In this document: positions 32,846 through 55,427 of the stretch, in pieces
Numbering within the stretch: position 1 is the stretch's first letter
Layout: every line of letters starts with the position of its first letter
Assembly: GCF_001194135.2 (NCBI RefSeq)
Contig: NC_068991.1
Coordinates: 6,924,780 to 6,988,779, forward strand
Direction: 5' to 3'
Source: Octopus bimaculoides
Lineage: Eukaryota
Length of the DNA: 64,000 bases
Position numbers and translations under genes: made by a program
Notes under the pieces: model-generated
Databases searched by the model: none
What the model saw: only the letters and a program-made list of their open reading frames with translations
Told to the model about the DNA's origin: nothing

Positions 32846-32919
32846 ACTGAGTCCCTCTACAGGGTCTTTCTGTAGTACAGCAGCAGAATATTCAAAAATA
32901 AGATCAATATGAGATGGAC
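32846..32919 (-). CDS. VPS39: VPS39 exon 16
   Basis: GPSHIDLIFEYSAAVLQKDPVEGLS (human GTENLHLIFSYSVWVLRDFPEDGLK); tttcag / gtaagt. Confidence 0.94.
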
Positions 32920-35193: not shown

Positions 35194-36464
35194 CTATGAA
35201 CAAGAGGAAAGAAAAATGTTAAAAGATGTACAAAAAAACCATAATTATAGTTGTTTAGCAGCAGATAATAAAGGAAACGTAAAAGCTGGAAATAATGTAA
35301 GTGATTAACAAGAATATAAAGAAAACATTCTTTCACGACCATACTTCTAATGAAATGCACTTTCTATAAGTTTTAATTAATTTTGAAAAATATTTAAAAA
35401 TCAAAATTTAGAAGAATTTAGTAACATAACATTTCTGTTATTAATCTGATGTTTGGGAGGCAACTAAATGGAAAGGGGTCTTACATAGGGTCATAACATC
35501 TTAACTTTAAACTATGAACACTTTTAAAAAATGAGAGATTTTGTATCATAGAAGGAGAGGCAGTCATAGAAATTAATTACATCAAATGAATTGGCCCTGT
35601 CACCTCCCTTATCCCCACCCCTGTACACCCCTTCATGTTGTCAACAGCATCCCCCTCCCATTATCTCCATATGTCTGCCACTATTTCCCCTCATCACCCT
35701 CCCAGGAATAGTATGTAGAGTAAATGGATAGACAAACAGACAGACGGATGGTCTTTCTTTTATTTTGTTAATTTCTATTTTGGTTTCTCATTTTAACCGA
35801 ACACCTAAAGCTTTCGCGAGTCCTTTTTATCTAAAGAATCAGTATGGGTAAGATTAGAGGAGTTAACATTTAATTTAAATAACTTTCAATTAGTATTTGG
35901 AGTAAGAAGAATTGCAGGAGAATGCAAATCTAGAGCAGAGAGATTAGGAGATGGGGGGGGAGGCAAGACACAAAAGCAGTGACAGAGGAGAAAAAGGAGA
36001 TGCATTAAGTGGATTTGGGTGGGAAAAAAACATGGAAGAAACAACTGCAGAAAGAGTGGGGAGGGGGAGCATTGTAAAAATGGTCTATGGGTCAAAAATT
36101 GCTGGGTGTTTGGGAGTGTTAATTTCTATCAGACAAACAATGTTTTACTTAGATGCAATCTAATTTGAGGGGATTATGTAAGCAGTAATTCATTGTGAAT
36201 CTCTCCGATATATAAAGGAGAATTGCTTTATCATTTTAATGGGTTCTCAGATAAATTTGCTCATTTCTTTCCAACGTTATCTAAATTAGAACAAAAAATG
36301 GTTTTAAAAATTGGTTTTAAAAATGGTTTTTAAAAAAGTGTTTTATTTATTTATTTATTTATTTGAGCTCTGTTCTTCTTCTACAACTTTCGTTAATCAT
36401 TTTTTTGAAATTTGAATAAATTTTAATCTGTCCAGACACTAGCATTTTTGACACTTTCTCTTTG

Positions 36465-36880
36465 CTTTCAATCAAGGTACCAAAACTGCCAAAGCCACTT
36501 GAGACATTTGTATTGTACATGAAGAAGGCACTGTTACTGAAAGAATGGCACAGAAATGGTTTTCATGCTTCATGGAAGAGAAATTCGATTTCACAGACTG
36601 TCTGTGTTCCAGCCAACCTCTACAGTTCAATGACGATTGAACAAGCTCTTCCACAAGGATCCATGCCAATCCACTAAGGAATTGACCCAACAGATGAGAT
36701 GCTTTTATCATATTGTTACCTCTTGCTTTTACTCTGTGGGTAAGGACGGAAAACTCAGTAAATGTGTGCCACATGCTCTGAAGAAAAGAGATACATTGTT
36801 GATTTGACCAAAAATCCTATTCAAGAGAGTGGTTGTAAAGCTCTACTACACCAACCATATTCTCCTGATATTGTCACATA
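36465..36880 (+). pseudogene. Decayed mariner transposase fragment
   Basis: Frameshifted segments read ..EEGTVTERMAQKWFSCF.., ..KDPCQSTKEL.., ..KCVPHAL.. and PYSPDI (mariner YSPDL motif). Confidence 0.7.
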
Positions 36881-37611
36881 AAAAGCACCCGTGCTAGTGC
36901 CATGTGTAAAACATGTGTGCTGGTGCCACATGAAAAGCATCCAGTACACTTTGTAAAGTGGTTGGTGTTAAGAAGGGCACCCAGCTGAAGAAACCATAGC
37001 AAATCAGACAATTGGAGCCTGGTTCCAGCTCTCCAGCTTGCCAACTCGTCAAACCAGCCAACCCATGCCGGCAGGGAAACAATAGCTGTTAAATCATGAT
37101 GATGATAGCACCTCGAAATTATCACCTTTATCACCTTTACTCTCCAATAGTCTGTGAGGCATTTTGTTCAACAATGATGTAGAGCAGCAAATGTGGCTCA
37201 ATGAAGTCAAGACCCAGTGACTGCTACCATCAAGGCATTGACAAGCAAGCAGAACACTTGGCAAGATGTCAAGAACAATGAAGAATATACAATTGACTGA
37301 TTTGATAAAATAAAATTGTTGATGGAAAATAAATATTAAAATAAATGGGGAAAATACAGGGATTTATCTGACAACCCAACGCATGCAATTAACATTTGAC
37401 TGTTGATGGATAAACTAGAGAATAACAATGATTTTTTTAATTCAAAATGCAAATAAAACTAAATAACATACAACACAGGTAAATTACTAAATTCATTTAT
37501 AGTGGTATACTGTGTATTGCAATGTTTGAAAATACTTTGCAGATTTAATTCATGCAGGTTGTATTTAGGAAAGTAGACAATATACAGAAAATTTTGTCTA
37601 TACACACATAC

Positions 37612-37754
37612 CTCGTTAAGGTAATCGATAAGTGCCAATAAGGCATTTTCGAGGTCACCACCATCTAACTCAGGCACAGTATCTGGGTAGGTGAGATCTT
37701 TATGGTAGCAGGAAGGCAGCAGATTAGGGTAGAGACCAATCACATGCGATGGAT
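37612..37754 (-). CDS. VPS39: VPS39 exon 12
   Basis: DPSHVIGLYPNLLPSCYHKDLTYPDTVPELDGGDLENALLALIDYLNE (human DPTHVMGLYPDLLP..AHLALIDYLTQ); taaaag / gtatgt. Confidence 0.97.
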
Positions 37755-38149
37755 CTTTTAAATAACAAATTCGTAAATATAGATGTCAATCACAAGTTTA
37801 TCAGACAACAATAAATCATGAAGAAATTTTATTTTATACAAAGCAGATTTATTAAAATAAAACAACAGTGTAATAAAATATTGCTTATCTGTAAGGGTTT
37901 TTAGTTGGTTATATCAACCCCTGTGTATTGTCTAGTATTTGTTTCAATGATCATAAGAGGGACGAAAATCAAATCAAAATCAAAATCAAATCAAGATTGA
38001 AATCAAAATGGAAATTGTAGTTGTGGCCAATGCCAGTGTCACCTGACTAGCACCCATGCTGGTGGCACGTAACAAGCACCATTCAAGCGTGGGTTGATGC
38101 CAGTGCCGTCTGACTGGTACCCCATGCCGGTGGCACGTAAAAAGCACCA

Positions 38150-38638
38150 TCTTTTTGTCATGTCCAGAATGTAGGACATAGGCAACCACATCCTTCCGCG
38201 ATTCTCTGTGCTTTGTTTTCTCTAACAGTTTCCAATTCCTGATGTTTAATGCCTCTTTTCGTCCAACCAATTCCTCAAACTCGACATCCATATCATCCTT
38301 CTCCTTCATCTGCTTCTTTTCCCATCAATCTTTCCAGTCATTGCTAAACTCTCCAGGTTCTCTTTCCTCATCAAATGACCAAGAAATCTCAGTTGCTTGG
38401 CCCAATGCAGCCCAGGTCATCACTTCGTCATTAGACTCTGTCTATCCTTAATATTCTCCGTAAGAACCACATTTCACAGCTCCCCAAGCACCTTCTTCAT
38501 ACCTAATGTCACAGACCTTGTGTTACTTCCACAAGTAAATCCATCTTTATTGCACTCCCAAAGAAATCAGAGGCAGTGGACTGTGAACAACATCGCACAA
38601 TGAGTCACATGGGTCACGTTACAAAAATCATTCTAAAC
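38150..38638. pseudogene. RTE-like LINE remnant with an inverted segment
   Basis: Minus 38150-38530 reads QLRFLGHLMRKENLESLAMTGKIDGKRS..; plus 38537-38638 reads KSIFIALPKKSEAVDCEQHRTMSHMGHVTKIIL. Confidence 0.7.
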
Positions 38639-38704
38639 TATACAAGAAAAATATCAAATGTGCTAATGGCTCAAACAAACTAAAAAATTATATTGCAACA
38701 TACA

Positions 38705-38912
38705 CGAGGGGGTGTTGAAAAATTCTTGGCTTTAAGGGTACTGCAAAAGGCCTGGTTGGAGGCCAAGATCTTTTACAGGGCTTAGAAAAACAGAAGGACT
38801 GCTGCAATAAGTGTGTGAATCTGAGAAAGTAATATGTTGACTAAAATCATAATTAACTGATCCTCCTGTATTTTCTTTTACCCAAAGCCAGGTACTTTTC
38901 AGCACCCCCTTG
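38705..38912. mobile_element. Tc1/mariner-type MITE
   Basis: TIRs CGAGGGGGTGTTGAAAAATTCTTGGCTTT / AAAGCCAGGTACTTTTCAGCACCCCCTTG followed by TA; sister copy in reverse orientation at ~13126-13330. Confidence 0.75.
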
Positions 38913-38933
38913 TAAACCAATATTAATACAAAC

Positions 38934-39069
38934 CAGTGTCCAATTCCATGAATAATTTCATTGATGCATCAAACTGGTGCTGGCAAAATAAATGAAATGC
39001 TTGTCTGTTCTGAATTTTTTGTAAACGTTTCTTCTTCTCTGCTTCACATTCTGATTCCATATTCTCTGC
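38934..39069 (-). CDS. VPS39: VPS39 exon 11
   Basis: AENMESECEAEKKKRLQKIQNRQAFHLFCQHQFDASMKLFMELDT; ctttag / gtttgt. Confidence 0.95.
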
Positions 39070-39734
39070 CTAAAGAATTAATTTTATCATCGTTAAAACA
39101 TTTTCTTAATAATAAAAAAAAATGTTTGTGTGTGTAGTGCTGATATATTTTTGTGTCTAAAGCATTAAAACAGTTACCTAAAAATACCTGTGAAGTGAGA
39201 GAAAAATTTATATGTCAATCGCTAATATTATTTTATCACTTGCCATGAAAAGTCGGAGATAACTCCTGACATGTTTCAACCTTCCTCTGACCTTCTTAGC
39301 ATGAATAAATCACTAAATAAATATGTAAACTTACAAAACTGTACATTTATTGATGCAAGAATATATGAATATATATGATTTGATCTAGTTGTGTGTCTGT
39401 GTTTGTCCCCCACCATTGCTTGACAACTGATGTTGGTGTGTTTCATCCCCGTAACCTAGCAGTTCGGCAAAAGAGACCGATAGAATAAGTATTAGGCTTA
39501 CAAAGAAGGGTCAATTTGTTCAAGTAAAAGCAGTGCTCCAGCATGGCCACTTGTTTAATTGTTTACTAAAGGACAATAATAACAATATACAAACACATGC
39601 AACATATTATGTCATATCAGTAATTAAAAAAGGACATATAGTGACAGAAAATGTGATAATGACTTACAGCTGTTTCAGTCTATTGGATAGATATTATCCC
39701 TTAGTGGGTTGGATTCACAACCCCTAACCTTCTT

Positions 39735-39781
<47 letters not shown>

Positions 39782-40274
39782 TATATACTGTACTTGATGG
39801 CATATAAGACATGCTTTTTTTTTATAAAATATTCTCTCAAAAACTCATCCTACATCTTATGTACAGTCTTCATGTGCATCATGTTGGGCAAGTGACTAGG
39901 CCCATCAAAGCCTTGTGAATGGATTTGGTAGGAAGAAATTGATCAAACCCCATCCCCTCTCTCTCTCTCTCTCTCTCTCTGTATTTTTGTCTAGGCATCA
40001 CATGATGGTTGTAAAAGAGCATCATCATCATCATATAAGCAATGGTGTTTATTTCCAATCTTCTGTGAAAACATGTCCGGCCTGGGGGGAATATTACTTC
40101 ACTTGGAAACAGGTGAGGGTTGGTGACAGGAAGGGCATCCAACCATAAAAAATCTACCTCAACAAATTCTCTCTGACCAATGTGGGCATGGAAAAGTGAA
40201 CATTAAAACAATGATGATGATGATGATGGCAGAGGAAAGAGAGCTGGTAAAACATCCTGTTATGGTATACTTAC

Positions 40275-40392
40275 CACGAGACGTAAAGCTAACTCAAATT
40301 CTTTGATCTTCACCAAGTCATTCACTTGTTCAGAAATAGGGGCTTTTGTTAATCTCCAACAATGATTATTAGAAGCTACATACACAAGTCCA
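40275..40392 (-). CDS. VPS39: VPS39 exon 10
   Basis: SGLVYVASNNHCWRLTKAPISEQVNDLVKIKEFELALRLV; tttcag / gtaagt. Confidence 0.96.
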
Positions 40393-40972
40393 CTGAAATA
40401 AAGAACAAACAGCAAATGTGAACAAGCTCATAAAATGAATTCCCTTCATTCTTGCAGATTTTTCACTGACTCCAAGAATTTATACACTCTCAAATTAATA
40501 AGTCAATAAATCAAGACAGTGTTGGTGTTCGTTTAATTCTTAATGAATTAATACTTTCCTCTTAGTTGAAGAAAGAAAACAAACACCTAACAGTGTTCAT
40601 TAATGATTCATGAAGAAAAGAGAAGATTATTTTAAGAAATTGAGAATTAATTTTTAAAATTTCCTTCTCATGTTTAACCCTTTAGCATTTAAACAAACCA
40701 TATCCAGCACAAATATTCTACTTGTTTTATGTTAAAACTGGCCAGATCTGGCTTCTTGCATCTATCCTACAATGTCATTCTAAAAATAAACAATTACATC
40801 ATGGAAATCTTAAAGCTATGAGATAAGCCATGATTAATTCAAAATAATGGACTAGCATCTCATCTCATTATTCAAGACAAGAATAAATTCCATTTCGAGA
40901 AAGACTAAAGCAAGAAGTAATACTAAAATAGAGACAAAATTACTGAGAGACTTTCACGTAAAGTACACTTAC

Positions 40973-41093
40973 CTGCCAACACAAATGTATAACGGTTTAG
41001 GAAGCTCAATGCTTTGGATCATCAAACGAGGTTGAATAGTTCGGACTTCAACATATTTTGGAAGGACAGCAATAATGTAAGGAGGATCGTGCA
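40973..41093 (-). CDS. VPS39: VPS39 exon 9
   Basis: VHDPPYIIAVLPKYVEVRTIQPRLMIQSIELPKPLYICVG (human EHQPPYIIAVLPRYVEIRTFEPRLLVQSIELQRP); attatag / gtaagt. Confidence 0.97.
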
Positions 41094-42258
41094 CTATAAT
41101 ATATAATATATAATATAATAAATCAACAATAAATAAATGTTATAACAACAATATGAAAGCAATTCAATATCTACACAATAAACAATTCACAACAGTTTAT
41201 TGATAGTAAAGCCTGCAGATACACATTATGTGTGAGGGAATTTGGCTGCTATTTTTAGCAAGCTGAGCAACCACGTAAATGCATCCTTGTTGGCTCATCA
41301 TTTCACCAAGTTATATCTCCAAGTGAAAAGCCAAGCTATTGAACAGCTATAGTTTGGTTGTGTTGCAATGATGATGCTGAATATTCACGTGAAATAAATT
41401 TTAAAAATAATCAATGCAAAATTGTTCTTTGAGCCTTTAGCATTTAAACTGGCCATACCTGGTCTACATATTCTACCTGTTTTATGTTCAAACTGTCAAG
41501 ATCCAGCCTCTTACACCAACCCTATAATGTCACTTCATAAATATACAATCATGTCACCAAATTCACAAACATAATACAAGATTAATTCAAAACAGTGTGA
41601 ATAAATAGGCAGTCGTGGCCAATGCCAGAGTTGCATAACTGGCTTGTTTAAAAGCGCCCTTCAATCGTCAGGCAATATGCTGTGCTTGTGAAGACCTCTC
41701 AAACTGCATGAAATCACAGTCATGGCCGATGCCAGTGTCACCTGGTGGCACGTAAAAAGCACCATTTGAGTGTGCCCGCTGCCAGTGCCACCTGACTAGC
41801 ACTCATGCTGGTGGAATGTAAAAAGCACCATTCAAGCGTGGCCGATGCCAGTACTGCTTGACTGGCATGTAAAAAGCACCGTTTGAGTGTGGCCAATGCC
41901 AGTGCCGCTTGACTGGCCCCCATGTTGGTGGCACATAAAAAGCACCCACTACACTCTCGGNNNNNNNNNNGAAGGGCATCCAACACTAGAAACCGTGGTG
42001 GTGGTGGCGGTGTGTGTGTGTGTGTGTGTGTGTGTGTGCATGTGTCCTTATGTTTGTGTTTGTGCCCCCTACTGTCTGACAACTGGTGTTTGTTTGTTTA
42101 CATCCCCCATACCATAGCAGTTTGGCAAAAGAGACTGATGGAGTAAGTACTAGACTTGAAAAAAAATAAGCACCAGGGTCACAAGGCAGTACTCCAGCAT
42201 GGCCACAGTCCAATAACTGAAACAAGCAAAAGATAAAAGACGAACTGTAACAACTTAC

Positions 42259-42442
42259 CAAGAGCGATGGGAATGTCAGTCCACTGAAGTGGATATTTCT
42301 GACTTGGGGAACCTTCTTCATCAATAAAGATGGACATTTCATTTCTTCCGAGAGTAATTTGATTATCAGACAATTTAGCAACAAGAGGTTCACTTCTCTT
42401 ACCTCCAAGAGAGAACAGTTCTTTTAAGTTTCCATCATTTAC
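42259..42442 (-). CDS. VPS39: VPS39 exon 8
   Basis: VNDGNLKELFSLGGKRSEPLVAKLSDNQITLGRNEMSIFIDEEGSPSQKYPLQWTDIPIAL; ttcttag / gtaagt; 184 nt. Confidence 0.97.
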
Positions 42443-42880
42443 CTAAGAAGGAAAAAAAAAATATTTTTGAAACAATATATTAGCCTCAATATTTCTCTAG
42501 TTTTTCGGGCCTTGTGCCTAGAGTGGAAAAGAATACTTCTCTAGTAAACCTTGGGAGAGGCATTATGCCGCTAATAAACACATGCACTGGTTTGGTCCTG
42601 CTTGGCCCTCTGTGAGCCTCAGTCTTCTTACAGCTGAATCTCAGACAGACAATTGATCTTACTGACCTTGTTATACACGACATATTTTGGTAGTAGTTGG
42701 TGGCATGCGTCACTTCTAAGTTATACACGAATGCCATCAACTACCACCGAAATGTCCCTCTTGCACACTGCCCCCCTTGTACAAATGTCCCTCTTGCACA
42801 AATGTCCCTTTTGCACAAAGTAAGAAGCAAACAAGAGCAAGAAATAAATGGACATTAAATATTGAAACTCGTTAACTTAC

Positions 42881-42973
42881 TTTTATCACAAAATATTCTC
42901 GTTTGAATCCGACAAATATGGAATCGTTACACCAACTCATGGCTCGTGGTGTGTCGTAAAGCGATAAATCAGG
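42881..42973 (-). CDS. VPS39: VPS39 exon 7
   Basis: PDLSLYDTPRAMSWCNDSIFVGFKREYFVIK (human GDFSVPDVPKSMAWCENSICVGFKRDYYLIR); ttccag / gtaagt. Confidence 0.96.
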
Positions 42974-43259
42974 CTGGAAAGGCAAAATTATTCAATATTA
43001 TTATATCATTAATTAATTACTGTATTTGATGGTACATAAAATGCACCATTTTCTGTCCAAATTCACAGACGCAAAGTGGGGGGGGGGCAGAAGAAGAAGA
43101 AGAAGAAGATGATGATGATGATGATGATTAAATAAAGAATAAGTCCTGGGGTCGATTTCTTCGTCTAAAAAACCCTTTAAGGTGGTGCTCCAGCATGGCC
43201 AGAATCAAAAATGACTGAAACAAGTAAAAGAATAGGAGAGTTAAAAACAGTGGACTTAC

Positions 43260-43298
43260 CTGCATTTCTTTAAATTCACGATTTCTCCAGTAATACAA
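43260..43298 (-). CDS. VPS39: VPS39 exon 6 (provisional number)
   Basis: LYYWRNREFKEMQ (human LYFWKDREFHELQ); ttttcag / gtaagt; 39 nt. Confidence 0.93.
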
Positions 43299-44388
43299 CT
43301 GAAAAAGATAATTTCACCATTACATTGATATTGGGAATGATTTTGAAAACTGGGAAATTAAAAAGAAAAGTACAAAAGCATTTGCTGGTAAAAAAATAAA
43401 TAAATAACAGCAACAACCACTGGCACCAACATTGCCACCACCACCACCACCATCATCTAACATCCATGTTTCATGCTCTGACGGGTTGGATAGTTTGATG
43501 GGATCCAAAAGGCCCAGCAATTGCATTGTACTCTGATGTCTGCATTGCTATGGTTTACATGGCTTCTTAATGTCAAATACAGACAAGATTGAAAGAGAAT
43601 GTTTAAAACAACCCCTTCAATTGCATTGAAGCAAGCAAGGGTCTTATTAAGAAACTGACTGTAAATATCATCACCACCATCATCATCATCATCATCCTCA
43701 TCGTTTAACATCCACTCTCCATGCTGGTATGAGTTGGATGGTTTGACACAGGGAGCTGTCCGGACTCCAGCTGTCTGTTATGGCATAGTTCCTACAGCTG
43801 GAAGCCCTTCTTAACATCAACCACTTGACAGAGATTTCTGGGTGCTTTTTACATGTCACCATCACGGGTGCGTTTACGCAGCACCAACACAGGTGTGTTA
43901 ATGCAGCACCAGCACAGGTGCTTTCTAAGTGGCACCAACACCTNNNNNNNNNNNNNNNNNNNNNNNNNNNNNNNNNNNNNNNNNNNNNNNNNNNNNNNNN
44001 NNNNNNNNNNNNNNNNNNNNNNNNNNNNNNNNNNNNNNNNNNNNNNNNNNNNNNNNNNNNNNNNNNNNNNNNNNNNNNNNNNNNNNNNNNNNNNNNNNNN
44101 NNNNNNNNNNNNNNNNNNNNNNNNNNNNNNNNNNNNNNNNNNNNNNNNNNNNNNNNNNNNNNNNNNNNNNNNNNNNNNNNNNNNNNNNNNNNNNNNNNNN
44201 NNNNNNNNNNNNNNNNNNNNNNNNNNNNNNNNNNNNNNNNNNNNNNNNNNNNNNNNNNNNNNNNNNNNNNNNCACCAAGTGCTACTTGAAATTTCCATAC
44301 ATAAGATGTCTACGTTGCAGAGATTATTAAGCACTTTCTCTCTTTTTCTTTCTCTCCTCCCTCTTTTCCAACTGGAGTAGCCCTGTAG

Positions 44389-44645
44389 CTCCTCTACAGC
44401 AAGACACACCCATTTCTGTCATGCATCTCCTCTACAGCAAGACACACCCATTTGTCATGTATCTCCTCTACAGTAAGACACACCCATTTCTGTCATGCAT
44501 CTCCTCTACAGCAAGACACACCCATTTGTCATGCATCTCCTCTACAGTAAGACACACCCATTTCTGTCATGTATCTTGTCTACAGCAGGACACACCCATT
44601 TCTGTCATGTGTATCCTCTACAGCAAGACACACCCATTTCTGTTC
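44389..44645. repeat. Minisatellite, ~7 x 34-40 bp
   Basis: Unit ctcctctacagcaagacacacccatttctgtcatgcat. Confidence 0.9.
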
Positions 44646-44865
44646 CTCATATTTTATGCCCCTAGATCCACAAAACTGATTCTCACCATTGGCCATGCTT
44701 CCATCCACGTTCACCACTCACTGTATTCAGTTCTGTTCTCATCCCCATCCATCTGCCACACTTCTTTCAAACACCCATAAACTAACCTACCCATTCACCC
44801 TATCAAATGCCCCATATTACTTCTCTTATGTATATATATATACACATATATATATGTACAAATAC

Positions 44866-44912
<47 letters not shown>

Positions 44913-45330
44913 NNNNNNNNNNNNNNNNNNNNNNNNNNNNNNNNNNNNNNNNNNNNNNNNNNNNNNNNNNNNNNNNNNNNNNNNNNATATATGCATATAT
45001 AGACACACATATATAAAATACATTAAATTAAATTAATAATTATATATACATGTATATAATTATATTAAGGGAGTAAGGGCAAAAACAACCTCGAAAGGAT
45101 GGCAAAGTCAACCTCGGCGGCATTTGAACTCAGGACATAAAGATGGACAAAATTCCACTAGGCATTTTGCCCAGTACGATAACAATTCAGCCAGTCTGCT
45201 GCCTTAATCGATATAAATATTTAAAAAGTTGTTTATCTCTAGAAAAAAAAATGAGGTTAACACACAAAAAAAAAATTATAACTTTAACAAATATCTCGTC
45301 CCAGACATGTAATAATTTTTTTTTTCTTAC

Positions 45331-45425
45331 CTTTACATCAACAGCAAATAATGTTGCTCCTTTGGTTCGACTCATTATAGTTAACAATCCAAATGTAGAT
45401 AAGTCATGGACACTTATTACGTTAT
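45331..45425 (-). CDS. VPS39: VPS39 exon 5
   Basis: DNVISVHDLSTFGLLTIMSRTKGATLFAVDVK (human ENNIYVHDLLTFQQITTVSKAKGASLFTCDLQ); cacag / gtaag. Confidence 0.96.
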
Positions 45426-45515
45426 CTGTGTTGAGGATAAGAACAAACACATAAATTAGCAAATAATTTTAGAAAACCGACATTTAAAAAAAAAAAAATG
45501 TACAGAAGTAAATAG

Positions 45516-45880
45516 AGGCGTAGGAGTGGCTGTGTGGTAAGTAGCTTGCTTACCAACCACATGGTTCGGGGTTCAGTCCCATTGCATGGTACTTTGGGCA
45601 AGTGTCTTTTACTATAACTCTGGGCCAACCAATGCCTTGTGAGTGAATTTCGTAGAGGGAAACTGTGAGGAAACCCATCATATAAACACATGTGTTTTTG
45701 CTGTGTTTGTTCCCCCATCACCATTTGTTTACTTGTCCATAACTTAACAGTTCAGCAAAAGAGACCAACTTAACCCCCCCCCCCCCAAAATGTAATGGGA
45801 TAAATTTGTTTGACAAAACTCTTCAAGTATGGTGCCCCAGCATGGCCACAGTCCAGAAACTGAAACAAGTAAAACATAAA
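45516..45880 (+). mobile_element. tRNA-derived SINE family A
   Basis: Co-linear with 7348-7800; tail ends ~9 nt from the exon 4 donor. Confidence 0.85.
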
Positions 45881-45889
45881 AATACTCAC

Positions 45890-45935
45890 CAGACAGACTA
45901 ACCAAGATATATTCTTCATCTGTAATTGCAGACAG
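45890..45935 (-). CDS. VPS39: VPS39 exon 4
   Basis: LSAITDEEYILVSLS; ttgcag / gtgagt; 46 nt, phases 0 to 1 fit neighbours. Confidence 0.9.
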
Positions 45936-46395
45936 CTGCAAAGAATAGTTTTAAAGAATTAATTCAACCGATTTTATGGAAGTAATTAATGTAGAAAATT
46001 ATCAAAGCAAGTTGCGAAATGGAGAAAATTCTTTGTTTTGTGATATTCTAAAGAAACATGGAAATGAACAACAAAGTATAACTACATTTTTACAACATCC
46101 ATATTAATTAGGTTACTTATGACAATACACACACACACACACACACAAGAATATGCTTGTAACAATTTACAGTCCAAATTCTAAAGTAAAACAAAAAACT
46201 AAATCACCAGTTTTTAACATAGATTTAATGAAACAAAACTACTTTAGTACGTAATTAAAAACATGTTGATAAATACATACGTTAAGTCTAAAAGTCCTAA
46301 GGTTTCAATTTACATCTGTTTCACGCTGTTGCTGAAATTACCAGACACTGTGCAGTCGGTCAATTTTGGAGAGAAAGGATCAGAGTGACGTACAA

Positions 46396-46458
46396 CAGTG
46401 GTCCTCAAACATTTTGGCACCACAGACCGATTCCATGCAAGACAATTTTTCCATGGAG
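46396..46458. mobile_element. hAT terminus fragment resembling MER1/Charlie3 end
   Basis: CAGTGGTCCTCAAACATTTTGGCACCACAGACCGATTCCATGCAAGACAATTTTTCCATGGAG, about 80% identical to the recalled MER1 terminus. Confidence 0.55.
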
Positions 46459-46961
46459 TGAGGAATCATGTGCGTAACAAGACACAATAAGGTGCAGAAT
46501 ATATGTAATTCATTACATATATAATACTTATATAATACAGCAAAACCCTGCAGACTGTGATAATGATGATGATGATCATCATCATCACCATCATTTAATG
46601 TCCATTGTCCATGCTGGCATCGGTTGCACAATTTCACCAGGGCTGATAAGCTGAGGAACCCCCCAGCTTGCGAGCTCTGGTCACACCGTCCAATCCATGC
46701 CAGCATGGACAACAAACGTTAAATGATGATGATGAAAGCACCTTGACAAACATAAGTGGTTGACTGATAACCTGAATGATTAATCAAACAATCAATTAGT
46801 TAACTGATTAAATAGTTAATTAACTGACAAGTAAGGAAGAGAAATAAAACTGGTGTATGTGTGTTCATCATTAGCATAATGACCCTCCCAAAATGCAACA
46901 AAGAACATTCTTTTAAAAATTAATGATAATTATCTCATTAAATAAACAGAAAAGTACTTAC

Positions 46962-47026
46962 TTGAGTGATTGGTTTTTTAGCAAATGATTTGTTAGAACC
47001 TTCCAACTGAATGCTGAATTTATTCT
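46962..47026 (-). CDS. VPS39: VPS39 exon 3
   Basis: ENKFSIQLEGSNKSFAKKPITQ (human NRFEVTLEKSNKNFSKKIQQ); gacag / gtaagt; 65 nt. Confidence 0.95.
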
Positions 47027-47904
47027 CTGTCAAAAACAAAATTGACAATATTGTTAGTGAATGCTAGATACAATAATGATAATAATTCATTCTTTTATTA
47101 GCCACAAGGGCTCGCATAAAACAACATTAAATGACAAGCAACAACATAAAAGACAAAAACGGGACGATACAATGTTTTCTGCATGTAAACAATATAAATA
47201 ACAATTAAAAAATTAAACAAATTAAAACTCCCAATAGGGGAGGTGCTTTAAGGTTCTCGTGGAAAAACCCAGAAAAGCCACGGGTGCCTGATCAACAGGG
47301 CAAGAGCCCTTCTCCTTTAATTTTTTACAGGTGCATGCTCAGAATTGGTCCTTTCACACTGGTCATTCTTCCAACATNNNNNNNNNNNNNNNNNNNNNNN
47401 NNNNNNNNNNNNNNNNNNNNNNNNNNNNNNNNNNNNNNNNNNNNNNNNNNNNNNNNNNNNNNNNNNNNNNNNCCCCCCCCCCATCTTTCAACAAACTTGT
47501 TACAAGGCAACACTTCCCTCTCCACCCTCAACTTCCTTTTCAAGTGAAATTTGAAAAAGATGATGAGGGCTTGGCCAAAGAGGAAAGTGTCTGTCTTTAG
47601 CCCTTTCAAACGGGTCCACCATACTACCTCTTTCACTACAGCCACTAGACAAATAAAAATTACCTGCCTCAAATCTGGAGGGAGGGGTCTAGTCATTTAC
47701 ATCGACCCCAGTGCATAACTGGTACTTATTTAATCGATCCCGAAAGGATGAAAGGCAAAGTTGACCTCAGCAGAATTTGAACTCAGAACATAGAGGCAGA
47801 CGAAATACCGCTAAGCATTTTGTCCAGCATGCTAACAATTCTGCCAACTCACTGCCTTCAAGAATAATAATAATGATGATGATGATGATGACGATGATGA
47901 TGAA

Positions 47905-48050
47905 ATTATTGTGTATAGTGCTCAGGTGCACTACAACCTCAGTCTCTGCAGCACTAATTCTCATTCCAGACTTGCAGCACTCAGCAACAAACCCATTCAG
48001 TGTATACAAGAGATCATCTTCTGCTGAGCCAAAGTAGCTGCATATCATCT
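47905..48050 (-). pseudogene. LINE reverse-transcriptase fragment (RTE/Rex-like)
   Basis: SAEDDLLYTLNGFVAECCKSGMRISAAETEVVV resembles the segment after the YADD motif (..LQ.ALDRFAAEC..AGM.IS..K.E.MV). Confidence 0.6.
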
Positions 48051-48257
48051 ACAAATATCAACCAAATGATCCTCTAACACAACAGCTGTGCATGTCAATA
48101 GTTCATAAGAATTATGAAAAGTAGAGCTAACAATATGCACCCCAACTGAAGTTCAACACCCACGTTGAAAGGTTTTGACTTAGCACCATTTAACTGAACA
48201 CAAACATTTAGGCAGTAACAGAGTGGGGATTGTAAACAGGACACAATGAAGTAATAC

Positions 48258-48329
48258 CTTGGTCTTTGTCTTTGCTGATTTTATACTGTAAAAGATGTCC
48301 TTGTTTTGTTCCAACCAACAATACATCCT
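48258..48329 (-). CDS. VPS39: VPS39 exon 2
   Basis: EDVLLVGTKQGHLLQYKISKDKDQ (human EEWLLVGTKQGHLLLYRIRKD); tttcag acceptor, gtatta donor; 72 nt. Confidence 0.96.
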
Positions 48330-50175
48330 CTGAAATATAAATATAAGGGGTAAAATATCAGAGATAAATAATTAGTGATAATTAAATTCACAATAACTAT
48401 GTTGAGAAAATGAAAGGAAACCAAATCAAGGTAATGTAATGCCCACGAAGCAGCAGAATGAGGTACTGTCACTAAATTTAAAAGAATCAGAAGTTTCAAA
48501 TTTGATAATTAATACTTGATGGCAAATAGACTGCTTATGATAAAAAAAAAAAACTTCCATCATTCATAATTTTATGTAAAAGAACAATGCTCAAAGAAGC
48601 AAGGATCTGGATTTAGCAATTCCATTGCTAATGTTAGACACTTTTGCCTGCTATAGATACATCTCATGCTTGGCCTAGTGGTTAAGATGTCGGACTCACA
48701 ATTGTAAGACTGTGGTTTTGATTCCTGGACTGGGTAATGCGATGCGTTCTTGAGCAAAACACTTCACTTCATGTTGCTCCAGTCCACTTAGCTGCAGAAA
48801 TGAGCACCACTAGTGAAGGCGCATTGTTTAAAGGTTAGGTTGTTGGATTTACAACTGTAAGATTGTGAGCTTGATCTCTGGACCAGGCGATCCGTTGTGT
48901 TCTTGAGCAAGACACTTCATTTCACGTTGCTCTAGTTCACTCAGCTGTAGAAATGAATTTAGCCTGGAGAGGGATGGGCTCCACCAGGCTTTCTCACCCT
49001 AGATATGCTGCATAGCTGCAGCACCCCAACGGTACCCAATGGGTTAAGGGACTTGTCAGATATATCTCTCAACTTTCTAGCTCTATAAGTCTATACGAGA
49101 TGCTTTCTCGACTCCAAATTTATTTACCGTTATTTTAATATATACCATGCCGCGACGGGCAGGTATGTAATATAAGTGGGAAAGCATGCGAGGTAAAGGG
49201 AGTTAATTTTGGCCTGTATATATGCTTTGTGTAGTAGTAGTAGTAGTAGCAGCAGCAGCAGCAAGAAGAAGAAAATAGAGATAGGGTAATGTTGTAGAGA
49301 AGAGAAAGTGAGCTAGTGAAACTTAGATTCGACGGAGTTGTATGTCTCGTATTGTTTTCCTTCTCTCTCTGGCCGTTTGTCTCAAGTGGCTGTCTGCCGG
49401 TGGCCATCTCTAGTTGTCTCTGTTCATAAACTGATTTTGGCTAACGGAGTTCTAGTATTTATAACTATACAAAACTAGTTAGAAAAACAGACATACTGCA
49501 AAGACAATAGATTTCGTTGGGGGTCTGTTATCTCAATTCTAACTTTTGGTGAAATAGAAGAGATAACAAGAGTTAAGTGGTAAAGCCATAGTTTCTCTGT
49601 GGGGGTAAGTGCTGTTAAATTAGGTGAAATTTAGCAGATTCAGGTTCGAATTTACTCTATGCCTAAATGAAGTCCACTACATACTCTCTTTACTCTTTTA
49701 CTTGTTTCAGTCATTTGACTGCGGCCATGCTGGAGCACCGCCTTCAGTCGAGCAAATCGACCCCAGGATTTATTCTTTGGAAGCCTAGTACTTATTCTAT
49801 CGGTCTCTTTTGCTGAACAGCTAAGTTACGGGGACGTAAACACACCAGCATCGGTTGTCAAGCGATGTTGGGGGACAAACACAGACACACAAACATACAC
49901 ACACACACATATATATATGTATNNNNNNNNNNNNNNNNNNNNNNNNNNNNNNNNNNNNNNNNNNNNNNNNNNNNNNNNNNNNNNNNNNNNNNNNNNNNNN
50001 NNNNNNNNNNNNNNNNNNNNNNNNNNNNNNNNNNNNNNNNNNNNNNNNNNNNNNNNNNNNNNNNNNNNNNNNNNNNNNNNNNNNNNNNNNNNNNNNNNNN
50101 NNNNNNNNNNNNNNNNNNNNNNNNNNNNNNNNNNNNNNNNNNNNNNNNNNNNNNNNNNNNNNNNNNNNNNNNNNN

Positions 50176-50228
<53 letters not shown>

Positions 50229-52336
50229 ATAATATCGAGGAAAAGTTTTTCAATGTCACACTAAAATTTGTACTTGGAAGAAAAATAATACAATGTTTAC
50301 CAGCAACAGAAAATACAGACAGAAGTGAGGTTTTAAAAAAAACAAACAAACTCCGCTCTAACCAGCTACAGACAAAATTGAGGTATATAAATATTACGAT
50401 GGAGCAGAAAATGTGACGGAACTAGATAGAGAACAGCTACTATGACGATGAGTCATTAAACATAGGAGAGGCAATGACAATGATTTCATGTGATTCCACC
50501 TCCATCCATCCAGCCATCCCTTCAGTTCATTTACTAACATTAAACAAACTTCATTTGAAAAAAAAACGAAAGAAAGAAAGGAAGAAAGAAACAAAGAAAG
50601 CTTCCTCGGTAGTGCATGTTTGTTTATTGTTGTTTATCCGCTCCACCCAACCCCCTGATCAGCATGATCTAGTTGACCTGGCCCTGTGATCAAAGGTACT
50701 CCAACCACGATCAACAAATTGGCCACATTGTGCAATGTGTCCTTTTTTGTTTAAAGAAAATAATTAAAATAAACAAAGTTAGGCGTGGTTTCCCATAAAT
50801 CTGTCTGCTACTTCTAACATGTCAGGCGAACCACGTAGAAATTTGACCCGTACATTACGTTTATGTAGGTAGAGGTTTTGTTGGTGTTGCTTAACCCAAG
50901 GTCAGCACTAATTAAGCAAATATGATCAAAAACAATCCAGTCGTGATCACCTCGTCTTTCGTTCGGACAGCGTAGCCCGGACAAGGCAGTTGAATGTATC
51001 CCGCTTTTTAAGATAGTCTGGTGTAGAATGGGGGAGATTTTGAGTGCAGTAGCACCACCAAAATCGAGCAACCACTAACAAACAGGGTGGAGATATAACT
51101 TAATATACATCTATACACTCTTGAACGATTGTCCAAGTGACGGAAGTGAAGAGAAGTAACTCTGGCTCGAATAAGTTGTTAAAATACCACGGGATGTGTG
51201 AAAATAACAAGTACCACCAATGTGCTTATCTCGACGAACTACACTCTAAATAATAATTATATTCTTGCACTACATGCAGTACAGCGTTGGAACAAAACAC
51301 CAGTAATTCATTAATCGAACAGCAAAACTGCAAATTACTCTCCCCCGATATCTAAAAACGAGAGAGTTTCATAACTAGTCTCCGTCGTCAGACGATATTC
51401 AATAACCGATGGAATTCCACGACGGGATCGAAAGTAACCAGGCTGGTCCCACTTTTTCTGTATACGAAGATTTTGTAGATAAAGTGTTTTACATGTTGCA
51501 TACACAGCGTTTGCCAAAAATTCTATGGTTATGTTCTGTTACACAGAATACAATATCTAATAGTAAGATTCGCATAGACTGAGGTTGTATTTTATTAGCC
51601 CAAGGTCAGTCCTAATCGAGCTGACTAATTATCAAAAAACATGCCAGCCGTGACCACTCGGTGTCTTTGAAGTATGCAAAACCATATTATCTATTTTCCC
51701 AAGACAGAAGAGTATGATATGAGTGAAACTTGACTGCTATTTCTAGCAGGTCGGACGACCATGCTGATGCCCGCTCGGCTGTTGTTTTGATATCAAAGGT
51801 GTTCTACCTTTAACCACTTCACCTTCTGTATATCAAGGACTACATGGCATAATGAAATTCTTTTTTTACTGAAAACGATAGGTTGTCATTTCAGAGGCTC
51901 TCTCGTTATATCGATTTGCATTGCATACATATATGTGATTTGATGAAAGTTAGTGTTCTTCTCTAAAAGCAACAAATGCGTTCAAATTTAATTCAGAACA
52001 ACACGAAAGTCGGCACAAATGACAAGAGAAATGAATTTCCAAATTGACATAGAGCAGAAGATTAGACATATAAAAGCATTTAAACTCACTGGTTACGATT
52101 AGAAGTGTTTAGATGAAATGAATACGATTCTGACGAAAAACTGTAAAAACCGTTTCTATACTACCAACCAGTGTAACGATAATAAAAGTAGTTGTTCAAA
52201 AAAGATTCTCTATTCTATGCTCTTGGAATCATCATGATTAATCTAAGAATCTCCAACGCACAACCAGTGCTTGGTTAGATGAGTTTCCAATCACTAGCAG
52301 TAAGTGTTTTACACGAGGTCAAAAAAGGGGCGGGAT

Positions 52337-52387
<51 letters not shown>

Positions 52388-53871
52388 ATGTGTGTAGGTA
52401 GAACAATGGATCTTCGTGTTGCTTGAAGTGCTACATTATGGCGAAACGAGTAGGTGTAATATAAATTAGGATATCCAGCTATTTTATATATAAAAACTCA
52501 GTGTCCCGTTAATAAATAACATACACGGGTATATAATATCGTCGCCCAAAATATGATGTCAGCCTTATATGTTATATTTAATAACTTGTTCTTGTATCAA
52601 AGAATATAAATGCTCGTCTGTCGACAAAAACTGTTTTAGAAACTAATCGAATTAGCAAACTTAACGTGTAGTGTAGACCCGATGCAATTCAAATCATAAG
52701 AAACACTTGCGAAAGGTAAAACACACAAAATATTTGGTATAGGTGTTAAATAGTTCAAACTTTGATTGACTTTGTTCAATATCTTTTCTCATTACGAAAA
52801 GAAGTTATAATGTTCTCCTCGGAACTACAGCGATCAAATAGTCTCTACCGTGTTATTACAACAAACTTCTGAAGTTCTTTAGGCGAAACGCAAGACAAGT
52901 TGTAAAGGAACGGTGTGGGCAACGGAATCTTTATTGACAGAAATATTAATGTCTCCTAACTTGCAAAAATATCCTCAAGAGCCAGAATTGTGAATCGAAG
53001 GAATAGGATGCAAGTCCCGTGATAACGGGTAACATTCCGGAGGTGATCTTCCCAACAACTATAGAAAAACAGAGCCTTTCTCATAACATAGAAGAAAGTC
53101 TGTAGTGGATTTCGCTTCACACCGGTATAAATTTCAGGTTTCTAACATTATCGACCCAGAGCGACGAAAGGCGAAGTTGATAACGAATTAAGCGGAAAGA
53201 CAAATTATAGAAAAGCGAGATACTTAACCACTTGTCATTGCAATCACTTAAATAATGATATGTCGGGTTGCTATAAAGCTATCAGTTTTTAAGGGAGAAC
53301 TATAAAGGATTTAAACAACCCCGATACATGTACTGTACTTATAAATTAAATAATAAATACGGACTTCGGTCGCTTCAAAAAAAAAAATGATTATAGCTTG
53401 ATAAGTTCTGTCACATGAAATATTTGCCATAAAGTGCATTGTGCTTATTCATTATGAAAAAAATATGTTGTACGAATAATCGAATGTATTTTGCATTTAT
53501 TTCTCCAGCCTGTTAGCATTTTTTCATTCATCAAACGCGTTATTGTAGCATGTACTCTTAATTTTTATAGTTGGCGTCAGATCTGGTGTGTGAAAGGCAC
53601 TCCCAATCCGAACAAATCTACATCGGTTCGGAAAGGATATACAACAGTGTATCTCAATGTCACAATAACGATAACAAAATAGTAATTGAAATAAAGAATT
53701 ATACAAGGTGTTGTGCTGCTAGAGATGTATAAAAGAAACGGAGCGAATTATCTCATCGCCTTTAAAATACTGCGACATACCAAGTGGAATATGAATAAGA
53801 CAACTGATGAACGGGAAGTAAAAGTGATTATATGTTAAAAAGAAATGAATAAACGAGAATCCTGTTCCTAC

Positions 53872-53950
53872 CGTAACATGCAATAGATCCGATTTGAATT
53901 TGTAATGGGAGTTTTTCCAATATTGGAACAGCTTCGTAGGCACAAGGCAT
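53872..53950 (-). CDS. VPS39: VPS39 exon 1 (start codon)
   Basis: MPCAYEAVPILEKLPLQIQIGSIACY + G|gtagg donor; 79 nt, ends phase 1; human MHDAFEPVPILEKLPLQIDCLAAW. Confidence 0.93.
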
Positions 53951-54324
53951 ATTTAAAACATGAGATAAACACGCTAACAAGGATGCGTAAATCTCCCCCT
54001 CTCTCCTCTTCCTTCACTTACAGCTTGTTTGTGTCATGTGACCAGAATCATACACGAAAGAGTTACACTCAAGTCTGATAACTTCAGTTGGTCTGCATCG
54101 TACTGTAAACTTTGATTACCGTACTGTAAACTTTGAAAGACTTGGGCAGTGTGCGAAATTTGAATGGTAGTATAAACTTGATTAACTACTTTATAATCAC
54201 TTTAGATTGAAATTCATTACAAAATATATTTGATTTCTTCTATTTTTTTATGATTATATTGATGTTATAAGATTAATTCCTTCGCGTTGTTAAAAGTGAA
54301 AGTAGTGAAACTATCTCCGCCATT
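53951..54324. promoter_or_regulatory. Putative bidirectional promoter / 5'UTRs shared by VPS39 and TRPT1
   Basis: 374 bp between divergent ATGs; contains GTCATGTGAC (54033-54042) and a 17-bp direct repeat CGTACTGTAAACTTTGA (54099-54115, 54120-54136). Confidence 0.7.
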
Positions 54325-55095
54325 ATGAATCCCTGTGAACGAAGTAGATATCCCGATTATTCTTCAAATAATAACAGTCGGCAAAACTATAAAACTTCCA
54401 GGGGTGCCAGTCATCGTCGAGATAACAGAACTGAAACATGCGATTACCGTAACCAAAATAGGCAACCACGAAGACATCATCCATATAGACCTGATCTGGA
54501 TGTTGTTGCTCTTTCAAAGTATCTCTCTTTCATTTTGCGTCACCCAAAGAAAGATTCGAGACTGCAAATGGATGAAGAAGGATATATATACGTTAAAGAT
54601 ATTTTAAAAACGTGGAAATTCCGTAATCTGGGATTGCAAGATGTTTTACATATCGTAGAAACTAATGACAAGCAGCGATTTGCTGTTAAACAAGATGTTT
54701 ATGAACGTTTCATGATACGAGCTACTCAGGGACATTCAGTAGAAGTAAATCTTCGTTTGGAACCAATTTTAGATCCGGAACACTTTCCTAAAGTGGTTCA
54801 TGGAACCACGTACGAAGCTTGGCAGTTCATTCGGTGCGAAGGCTTAAAGAAAATGAACCGCGCATACATACATTTTGCTATAGGTATGCCAGAGGATTCT
54901 GGTGTCATCAGCGGTATGCGCAGTTCGAGCGAAATATGCATTTTTATCAACTTGGCAAAAGCTCTGTATTTTGGAATTAAATTTTTCCTTTCGGAAAATA
55001 TGGTGATATTAAGCCAAGGAGACCAGGATGGTAGAATTCACCCTACGTTCTTCCTTTATGCTGTGGATAGAAAGACACGTAAATATGTACACTGA
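54325..55095 (+). CDS. TRPT1: tRNA 2'-phosphotransferase 1 (Tpt1/KptA family), single-exon CDS, 256 aa
   Basis: Uninterrupted ORF with family motifs LSKYLSFILRH, NDKQRF, IRATQGHS, VVHGT, MNRAYIHFA, VISGMR, SENMVILSQGDQDGRIHP. The eukaryote-type insert GMPEDSGVISGMR is present. AATAAA at 55235-55240. Confidence 0.96.
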   Translation: MNPCERSRYPDYSSNNNSRQNYKTSRGASHRRDNRTETCDYRNQNRQPRRHHPYRPDLDVVALSKYLSFILRHPKKDSRLQMDEEGYIYVKDILKTWKFRNLGLQDVLHIVETNDKQRFAVKQDVYERFMIRATQGHSVEVNLRLEPILDPEHFPKVVHGTTYEAWQFIRCEGLKKMNRAYIHFAIGMPEDSGVISGMRSSSEICIFINLAKALYFGIKFFLSENMVILSQGDQDGRIHPTFFLYAVDRKTRKYVH

Positions 55096-55427
55096 AAAAA
55101 ATTATATTTTGAGGCATTTCAACATTTACGATGGAATAGATAGGTTTGCTTTGCTAATATATATAAAAGGAAATAAGAGGCAATCTTAACATTTTCTTTT
55201 CGAAATATTTTCCTTGTCCGCTTATATGATACAAAATAAAATCAAAGTTGTAAATCGAAACCTTTCAAAACTTACATCGTGACTATTACTAATCACAAAT
55301 GTTTAATTTTTATAAAGATCATAACCAAACTGATTAATTCTATCAATATCACAATGTTTCTAACATCAATTTATATCCATTACGTTTGCTATTGATTTGA
55401 GCAATTCCTATCTATGTAAGAAAACCC

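Follow-up and report, generated by a model that had tools for sequence, protein, structure and literature searches.

A single-exon Tpt1 gene facing VPS39

The DNA analysed here ('the window') comprises 64,000 nucleotides of the Octopus bimaculoides genome (assembly GCF_001194135.2, contig NC_068991.1, positions 6,924,780 to 6,988,779 of the forward strand), within which an uninterrupted open reading frame (ORF) of the Tpt1/TRPT1 family, hereafter Tpt1-B, stands head-to-head with the multi-exon gene VPS39 (Table 1). Its product matches Pfam PF01885 (RNA 2'-phosphotransferase, Tpt1/KptA) over profile positions 4–177 of 177, with E = 1.7e-55 and 188.3 bits against a cutoff of 26. A first reading of the window, made from its letters alone and referred to below as the original prediction, had described an uninterrupted 771-nt Tpt1 ORF starting 374 bp from the VPS39 ATG on the opposite strand; both ORF and distance proved exact, and the interval delimited at the time runs from the final base of VPS39 exon 1 (53872) to the final base of an AATAAA hexamer (55240). 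An identical product is called on O. bimaculoides assembly GCA_001194135.2 at about 6.98 Mb of CM046611.1, an 80.9-Mb chromosome, flanked by VPS39 (860 aa, minus strand) on one side and a C2H2 zinc-finger gene (minus strand) on the other.

The order VPS39(-), Tpt1-B(+), C2H2 zinc finger(-) is common to O. bimaculoides, O. vulgaris and Argonauta hians, and the VPS39–Tpt1-B head-to-head pair is also carried by genomic Logan contigs of a fourth octopod, which are 83% identical to the window and stop short of the zinc-finger gene. Orthologous spacers measure 629 bp in O. vulgaris, 496 bp in Argonauta and 376 bp in the fourth octopod; measured from ATG to ATG rather than between transcription start sites, the pair thus lies well inside the 1-kb distance used for divergent genes, both here (374 bp) and in the three other species (376–629 bp).

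Table 1 Features of the VPS39–Tpt1-B locus in window coordinates
Feature	Coordinates	Strand	Remarks
VPS39 gene body	17132..53950	-	Multi-exon; may extend below 17132; most C-terminal exons unmapped
VPS39 coding exon 1 (MPCAYEAVPILEKLPLQIQIGSIACY)	53872..53950	-	ATG at 53950; GT donor at 53871-53870
Head-to-head spacer	53951..54324	.	374 bp between the VPS39 and Tpt1-B ATGs
VPS39-proximal conserved block, TGTTTGTGTCATGTGACC...AGAGTTACAC	54026..54068	.	76-118 bp from the VPS39 ATG
Exact 17-nt motif CGTACTGTAAACTTTGA	54099..54136	+	Two copies 21 bp apart; repeat family D3
TATA-like hexamer TATAAG	54266..54271	+	Candidate Tpt1-B core promoter; 27 bp upstream of the GAAA element
GAAA-repeat element AAAGTGAAAGTAGTGAAAC	54293..54311	+	Resembles an interferon regulatory factor element (IRF-E) or interferon-stimulated response element (ISRE); 32 bp upstream of the Tpt1-B ATG
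Tpt1-B coding sequence	54325..55095	+	From the ORF list; single exon, ATG start, 771 nt with stop, 256 codons
N-terminal tail, codons 1-56	54325..54492	+	Disordered; Ser/Asn/Arg/Tyr-rich; fast-evolving
Two-lobe Tpt1/TRPT1 catalytic domain, codons 57-256	54493..55092	+	From alignment, model and Foldseek
Candidate polyadenylation signal AATAAA	55235..55240	+	140 nt 3' of the Tpt1-B stop; not conserved

A eukaryote-type enzyme with a complete predicted active site

Among solved structures, the top relatives of Tpt1-B are human (7yw3, E = 2e-40) and mouse (7yw2, E = 2e-39) TRPT1, followed by yeast Tpt1; bacterial and archaeal Tpt1 chains mostly score between 1e-13 and 5e-7, with the exception of that from Runella slithyformis (7kw8, 1.4e-21). 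The Ser-Gly-x-Arg (SGR) motif of the donor loop, kept in eukaryotic TRPT1s and substituted in bacteria and archaea (PMC10415124), is present in Tpt1-B as SGMR (residues 196–199). In neighbour-joining (NJ) trees built from Kimura distances with 300 bootstraps, Tpt1-B nests among metazoan sequences. We therefore give virtually no credence to horizontal gain of a bacterial KptA, even though it would account for the missing introns and draw on a family widespread in bacteria; the original prediction had likewise judged the Tpt1 segments to be of eukaryotic type and to speak against bacterial transfer, a judgement that the TRPT1 best matches and the SGMR loop uphold.

An AlphaFold2 model of Tpt1-B has an overall predicted local distance difference test score of 83, with 82–98 over residues 57–256 and 46–59 over residues 1–60, and superposes by Foldseek on mouse and human TRPT1 (7yw2/7yw3) with a template-modelling (TM) score of 0.88–0.89 and a root-mean-square deviation of 1.7–2.1 Å. 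All invariant columns of a 35-sequence alignment (22/22) are retained. They include R72, H73, R118 and R179, the Arg-His-Arg-Arg catalytic tetrad known in yeast as R23, H24, R71 and R138 (PMC10415124); H159-G160-T161, H183 and V227 of the NAD+ site, which is made up of the HGT motif and an H-H-V triad (yeast H117, H142 and V187; PMC10415124); and S196-G197 of the donor loop, where R199 is also present. We considered whether a His-to-Tyr change specific to the B group (RAYIHF) removes the second His of the triad, but by yeast numbering the position is H140, not H142, which leaves the NAD+ triad intact.

Tpt1-B thus shares with mammalian TRPT1 and yeast Tpt1 (PF01885; 7yw2, 7yw3, 7yw4) the two-lobe fold, at 40–42% identity, together with the tetrad, HGT motif, H-H-V triad and SGR loop, and differs from them in its intronless coding sequence, in its 56-residue disordered N-terminal tail and in the substitutions RAYIHF (R-x-H-IHF in relatives), HGTTY (HGTY) and GMPED (GEPGE). 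It is also one of three paralogues, unlike its mammalian counterpart; TRPT1 is a single gene in most animals. Judged from its sequence, the ORF encodes a functional, old, intronless paralogue of TRPT1 with the predicted activity of an NAD+-dependent RNA 2'-phosphotransferase/nucleic-acid 5'-phosphate ADP-ribosyltransferase. With its complete active site behind a disordered and quickly changing tail, the protein should bind NAD+, and its predicted substrates, by analogy with mammalian TRPT1, are phosphorylated RNA or DNA ends or 2'-phosphates.

The tail is the most labile part of the protein. In O. vulgaris, 4.9 tandem copies of a 36-nt unit lengthen it; O. bimaculoides lacks this repeat. The tail arrays of O. 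vulgaris (locus L005, 10072–10318) and O. sinensis (proteins P0003 and P0004) are built of 12-aa units resembling QNQQRRPHPYRPD, and the O. sinensis Tpt1-B 'isoforms' X2 and X6 differ by 36 residues within the array.

Purifying selection on Tpt1-B

Ratios of non-synonymous to synonymous substitution rates (dN/dS) were estimated by the Nei–Gojobori method over the catalytic domain, with bootstrap intervals. For Tpt1-B they amount to 0.22 (0.11–0.35) between O. bimaculoides and Argonauta, 0.46 (0.28–0.75) between O. bimaculoides and the fourth octopod (Logan), 0.63 between O. vulgaris and the fourth octopod, and 0.90 (0.51–1.63) between O. bimaculoides and O. vulgaris; the corresponding values for paralogue A, introduced below, are 0.09 for O. 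bimaculoides against Argonauta and 0.47 for O. bimaculoides against O. vulgaris. The Tpt1-B ORF is open in five species, across dS >1.3. In neutral simulations, the probability that a 256-codon ORF remained free of stops was 0.015 at 0.14 substitutions per site and 0.002 at 0.3.

As a neutral ORF would seldom stay open, and yet that of Tpt1-B has done so in five species, these comparisons indicate that Tpt1-B is a genuine gene constrained by purifying selection. That the frame is open by chance, or belongs to a pseudogene in decay, could be argued from the ratio of 0.90 with an interval that includes 1, but is very improbable given the ORF intact across dS >1.3, a neutral probability of at most 0.002 at 0.3 or more substitutions per site, the ratios of 0.22 and 0.46 in the wider comparisons, and the retention of every invariant catalytic and NAD+-binding residue. 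The original prediction had proposed a retained copy and had asked for dN/dS between orthologues as a safeguard against a pseudogene; the ratio against Argonauta, the neutral simulation and the invariant residues all bear out retention. The value of 0.90 suggests that within Octopus the constraint on Tpt1-B is relaxed or mixed with positive selection.

Three intronless paralogues and a derived loss of introns

Tpt1-B is one of three octopod groups on three chromosomes. Group A, on CM046602.1 (a 192-Mb chromosome) near TUSC2, contains P0008 of O. bimaculoides, P0006 of O. vulgaris, a Logan sequence and P0043 of Argonauta hians; group B, on CM046611.1, contains the window gene and its counterparts in O. 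sinensis (71–78% identity), O. vulgaris, a Logan sequence and Argonauta (61%); group C, on CM046623.1, contains P0046 of O. bimaculoides, P0044 of O. sinensis and a Logan sequence. The coding sequence is a single exon at 7/7 loci (A, B and C of O. bimaculoides, A and B of O. vulgaris, A and B of Argonauta), that of O. vulgaris Tpt1-B being an intact ORF of 304 codons (L005, 10001–10915). The deposited O. vulgaris model P0010 (194 aa), which splices from this ORF via a long intron to a distant exon (L005, 10001–19873), is probably a mis-annotation.

Tpt1 of the gastropod Haliotis rufescens, by comparison, has 8 coding exons and 7 coding introns over 12.8 kb, and human TRPT1 is multi-exon as well. 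Set against the eight exons of Haliotis, the single octopod exon is a derived state, and since all introns were lost, an RNA-mediated origin is the best explanation and, on this comparison of gene structures, a very probable one. No gene, VPS39 included, is called within 10 kb on either side of Haliotis Tpt1, so that the arrangement which the original prediction had named as its own counter-case, an ancestral intronless pair across molluscs, is not what Haliotis shows. In the same Haliotis gene, the intron that follows one exon (L004, 18005–20016) holds at least five copies of a fragment of that exon (VMIYVDVAKALAAG), which indicates a tandem repeat including part of the exon.

Paralogues A and C resemble B in being single-exon and eukaryote-type and in carrying an IRF-E-like element no more than 400 bp from the ATG; B differs from them in sequence, with only 43–47% identity, and in its neighbour, no VPS39 being called within 10 kb of A or C. 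The slowest-evolving copy is A (dN 0.037 between O. bimaculoides and O. vulgaris, against 0.129 for B). All three C sequences (O. bimaculoides L003, 10001–10603; P0044; P0045) have SGMP in place of SGMR and so lack the SGR Arg, a residue through which human and mouse TRPT1 make contact with the diphosphate of NAD+ (PMC10415124); by this substitution, Tpt1-C may be catalytically altered. The annotated N-terminus of A (MESWLIIYTHSLKFFKTISISLLFS...; L001, 10001–10138; P0007 and P0008) looks like a read-through of the 5' leader, with MTRNK as the probable true start.

More widely in the family, tandem Tpt1-like stretches, two to five per protein, occur in some eukaryotes (P0180 of Owenia fusiformis, P0177, P0173, P0176, P0179 and P0174), and bivalve Tpt1s carry very long low-complexity extensions (Pinctada P0182, 687 aa).

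Age of the B lineage

In the NJ trees, the B clade receives 100% and the A+C grouping 99–100% bootstrap support, and B is about equally distant from A, C and gastropod Tpt1, at 43–50% identity to each. An exhaustive HMMER search brought up a further group, X (the P0178/P0315 cluster of 21 members, P0181 and P0183, from Logan and ENA assemblies), which joins B with 98% bootstrap. Group X resembles B in HGTTY, GLK-M, DRKTRK, a Tyr/Ser/Asn-rich N-terminal tail and uninterrupted ORFs, that of P0183 lying on a 63.7-kb contig, and differs in retaining the canonical NHIHF and GEPGE motifs. It probably derives from other cephalopods, most plausibly decapodiforms, in which case the B lineage and its intron loss would date back to the coleoid ancestor. 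In group X, leader peptides (F-T-I-x-I-S/P-L-F-S) precede the Met of P0178 and P0183, likewise to the annotated N-terminus of A; at the protein level, to which this observation is confined, they would fit TTTC-repeat DNA at that position.

B is old, its adjacency to VPS39 predating the Octopus–Argonauta divergence. The original prediction took it for a lone retrocopy, but a recent one does not agree with a gene order shared with Argonauta or with the distances of B, which is 43–47% identical to A and C and 45% identical to gastropod Tpt1. Nor was the intron-containing parent that it expected elsewhere in the genome found: O. bimaculoides A (CM046602.1) and C (CM046623.1) are themselves single-exon, and homologue searches revealed no intron-containing Tpt1 among annotated octopod proteins. 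What stands of the proposed retroposed and retained TRPT1 copy is the derived intron loss (eight exons in Haliotis), the position less than 1 kb from VPS39 and the selection; what falls is the intron-containing parent. Accordingly we hold it decidedly unlikely that B is a single retrocopy of a surviving intron-containing parent, expressed from the VPS39 bidirectional promoter and co-regulated with VPS39. Its intronless coding sequence, the 374-bp head-to-head spacing and the multi-exon outgroup genes are what such an origin predicts; the intronless state of A and C, the lack of a multi-exon octopod Tpt1 among the best matches, and a B lineage that precedes the Octopus–Argonauta split and is no closer to A and C than to gastropods are not, and the spacer, as described next, holds two separate conserved blocks and no single shared element that could have been captured.

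A different route to an intronless B would be loss in situ, with the VPS39–Tpt1 adjacency as the ancestral cephalopod site, a resident gene that recombined with its own cDNA, and A and C as later copies. The B lineage together with group X is apparently the deepest and most widely shared cephalopod branch, and the adjacency is stable in 4/4 octopods examined, both of which suit this scenario; it would, however, need about seven introns to be lost at once, and Haliotis Tpt1 has no called gene, VPS39 or other, within 10 kb. Simultaneous in-place loss of about seven introns is rarer than retrogene replacement, and we regard loss in situ as unlikely. With no multi-exon parent seen among annotated octopod proteins and intron loss extending to the whole octopod family, the pattern looks like retrogene replacement followed by duplication.

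Two conserved blocks in the spacer

Alignments of the spacer, first of three and then of four species (O. bimaculoides, O. vulgaris, Argonauta and the fourth octopod), contain two separate conserved footprints, one proximal to VPS39 and the other to Tpt1-B. The VPS39-proximal block also occurs in Argonauta (+36 to +69) and, in two to three copies, in O. vulgaris. It contains TCATGTGAC, which we take to be an E-box of the MITF/TFE (CLEAR/M-box) type that would suit a lysosomal gene; the exact TCATGTGAC is missing in the fourth octopod. The longer O. vulgaris spacer (629 bp) holds a (CT)45 microsatellite besides its two to three tandem VPS39-proximal blocks (L005, 9415–9502 and 9521–9720).

At the other end, the exact 12-mer AAAGTGAAAGTA within the GAAA-repeat element is found once per locus, at -32/-33 from the Tpt1-B ATG, in 4/4 species including Argonauta, and its count in the 64-kb window is one. 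The TATA-like columns read TATAAG, TATAAT, TATAAT and TATATT in the four species. Between O. bimaculoides and O. vulgaris, identity is 92% over the 230 bp upstream of Tpt1-B and 84% in VPS39 intron 1. The duplicated 17-nt motif CGTACTGTAAACTTTGA is present as one copy in O. vulgaris and has no exact match in Argonauta or the fourth octopod.

Since the two blocks are conserved separately, the spacer points to two core promoters about 260–300 bp apart rather than one captured shared element. The probable promoter of Tpt1-B is a TATA-like core of its own, combined with the conserved GAAA-repeat (IRF-E-like) element, so that this promoter and the separate VPS39-proximal block would share one short divergent spacer.

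An IRF-E-like element upstream of octopod Tpt1 genes

We compared the upstream regions with the IRF-E core, which we take to be AAA[GC][TC]GAAA[GC][TC], a consensus applied after the Tpt1-B sequence had been seen. One match lies within 400 bp upstream of the ATG at 8/8 octopod Tpt1 loci (window 54293; L001 9986, L007 9800, L008 9861 and L003 9915 among the fetched loci), whereas, of the other 400-bp windows taken from about 197 kb of octopod DNA, 0.74% contain the core. It is on the plus strand in Tpt1-B of all four species and on the minus strand in A of O. bimaculoides and O. vulgaris (GAAACTGAAACTGAAAG), in Argonauta A and in O. bimaculoides C (GAAAAGTGAAACTA). The core was not found upstream of Haliotis Tpt1. 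A stricter ISRE pattern, GAAANNGAAA[CG], was also tried on the Tpt1-B element and gave no match, the element fitting the IRF-E core only. Extra IRF-E-like copies lie 43 bp after the stop of O. vulgaris A and within codons 3–6 of Argonauta B.

Upstream of A and C there is a 145-bp stretch of mutual homology with which the elements of these two genes are roughly colinear; the element is consequently carried by at least two independent lineages, A/C and B, in both of which it has been kept since before the Argonauta split. This distribution suggests that the octopod Tpt1 paralogues are under common control of an IRF-like or PRDM1-like factor. One may go further and suppose that octopods, perhaps all coleoids, swapped a multi-exon TRPT1 for a small, fast-evolving intronless family under IRF-E/ISRE-like elements, whose members would be inducible innate-immune or stress effectors acting by ADP-ribosylation or dephosphorylation on RNA or DNA ends that are foreign or damaged, rather than housekeeping tRNA-splicing enzymes, with the adjacency to VPS39 incidental; we put this forward as a speculation and consider it rather unlikely.

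The same element bears on whether B is a DNA-level duplicate, segmental or dispersed, of a Tpt1 that had lost its introns beforehand, and came to VPS39 with its own promoter and GAAA element, without any capture. The excess of the element upstream of all eight loci, the A–C upstream homology and a TATA-like box belonging to B itself would all follow from such a copy. Its strand and distance in B nevertheless differ from those in A and C, B shows no detectable homology to A or C beyond the coding sequence, and three genes on three chromosomes are the usual pattern of RNA-mediated copies. On balance, we find DNA-level duplication somewhat unlikely as the origin of B.

Retrogene replacement as the favoured origin

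The reading that we favour, and think likely to be correct, is that octopod Tpt1-B is a functional, old, intronless paralogue which arose by retrogene replacement and multiplication, has been beside VPS39 since before the Octopus–Argonauta split and has a promoter of its own. The ancestral mollusc Tpt1 would have been multi-exon; in the cephalopod lineage, a reverse-transcribed copy would have taken over from it; the intronless gene would then have multiplied to A, B and C on three chromosomes; and B or its ancestor, arriving as RNA or DNA, would have taken up its head-to-head position beside VPS39 before Octopus and Argonauta separated, and stayed there.

Several observations weigh against this account or loosen parts of it. 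Monophyly of octopod A+B+C is weak (29–44% bootstrap), which would allow more than one order of duplications. The finding of no multi-exon parent refers to annotated proteins in public records and not to a whole-assembly search, and the decapodiform placement of group X is one that we infer. Downstream of Tpt1-B no poly(A) remnant was found, there being only a 7-base A run overlapping the stop and no A-rich tract in 500 bp, and around the gene the only candidate target-site duplications are short, imperfect, AT-rich matches of 11–12 nt, none of them convincing; such marks are expected to have decayed at the age of Tpt1-B, and given their loss, B may have arrived as RNA or as DNA, and A, B or C may be the original retrocopy. 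A and C share the roughly 145 bp of upstream homology and the colinear GAAA element, which fits DNA-level copying, or a long 5' untranslated region, for that pair. The dN/dS of 0.90 between O. bimaculoides and O. vulgaris tempers the case for selection. Lastly, five Logan contigs with a B-type protein (P0002) end 210–211 nt past the stop and had been considered as marking a polyadenylation site, but over exon 1 and intron 1 of VPS39 they align colinearly with the window, which makes them genomic contigs breaking at a repeat and no evidence of transcription.

By analogy, the closest described precedent is amphioxus SYCP1, where a retrogene took the place of its parent and co-opted the bidirectional promoter of CHIC; 'retrogene replacement', or orphan retrogene, is the name given there to a single-exon gene whose parent has been lost (PMC5803294). 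Both genes have one coding exon where other animals have several, in both the parental copy was not found, and both lie head-to-head with an unrelated neighbour across a short spacer in an arrangement kept among related species. Transcripts, de novo 5' untranslated exons and expression were demonstrated for SYCP1, whereas Tpt1-B is known here from DNA sequence alone; the octopod intronless gene also differs in being present in three copies and in having two separate conserved blocks in its spacer. Tpt1-B is thus no new kind of system, but a good, if not unprecedented, example of an intron-loss gene settled by a neighbour's promoter. A literature search found no paper treating TRPT1 together with cephalopods.

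TRPT1 is conserved across animals, though its role there is unclear. Animal tRNA splicing is not known to leave a 2'-phosphate. Many taxa that have TRPT1 do not need the 2'-phosphate-removing activity (PMC10415124). Having lost all introns, tripled and evolved quickly while keeping its catalytic residues, octopod Tpt1 lends itself to asking what purpose the enzyme serves. It also offers a datable invertebrate case of probable retrogene replacement that can be compared directly with amphioxus SYCP1, one intronless copy having kept its place in a head-to-head pair throughout the Octopus–Argonauta divergence.

VPS39 and the flanking sequence

The VPS39 exon 1 peptide is identical in O. vulgaris, Argonauta and the fourth octopod (Logan contigs). 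The product called on the source assembly (860 aa) contains CNH, Vps39_1 and zf-Vps39_C domains. A tblastn search with human VPS39, a probe that served for exon location only, gave 20 ordered blocks from 53950 down to 17132, covering residues 1–798 of 875. The multi-exon structure in the original prediction is thereby confirmed; its figure of at least 23 coding exons is plausible. A homologue search with a VPS39 N-terminal query assembled from the window exons returned short fish and mammal fragments and no mollusc VPS39.

In 4-kb bins, the CpG observed/expected ratio is 0.24–0.63 along the VPS39 body (0.24–0.5 over most of it) and 1.18 in 52001–56000, the bin containing the promoter, the start of VPS39 intron 1 and Tpt1-B, a pattern consistent with a VPS39 body methylated in the germline and a promoter domain free of methylation. 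The value for Tpt1-B itself is about 1.1. We considered the contrast between Tpt1-B and the VPS39 body as a sign of differing regulatory classes and gave it little weight, because no CpG depletion would be expected so close to the promoter region, from which Tpt1-B is at most 1.2 kb away.

Downstream of Tpt1-B, the segment with the candidate AATAAA has been lost from O. vulgaris by deletion, and in the fourth octopod (Logan contigs) the hexamer is AATGAA. Beyond it, 333 bp from the Tpt1-B stop, lies a near-perfect palindrome of 185 bp (55428–55612), relatively GC-rich, with outer arms of 33 nt (97% complementary), inner arms of 43 nt (98%) and a centre in which (CCCTAA)3 faces (TTAGGG)3, the vertebrate-type telomere repeat. 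It was not found at the orthologous loci of O. vulgaris, Argonauta or the fourth octopod (Logan), and may be a foldback element or a miniature inverted-repeat transposable element. About 0.8 kb downstream of Tpt1-B, an assembly gap (a run of N at about 55910–56630) appears in the ORF list as poly-X 'ORFs'.

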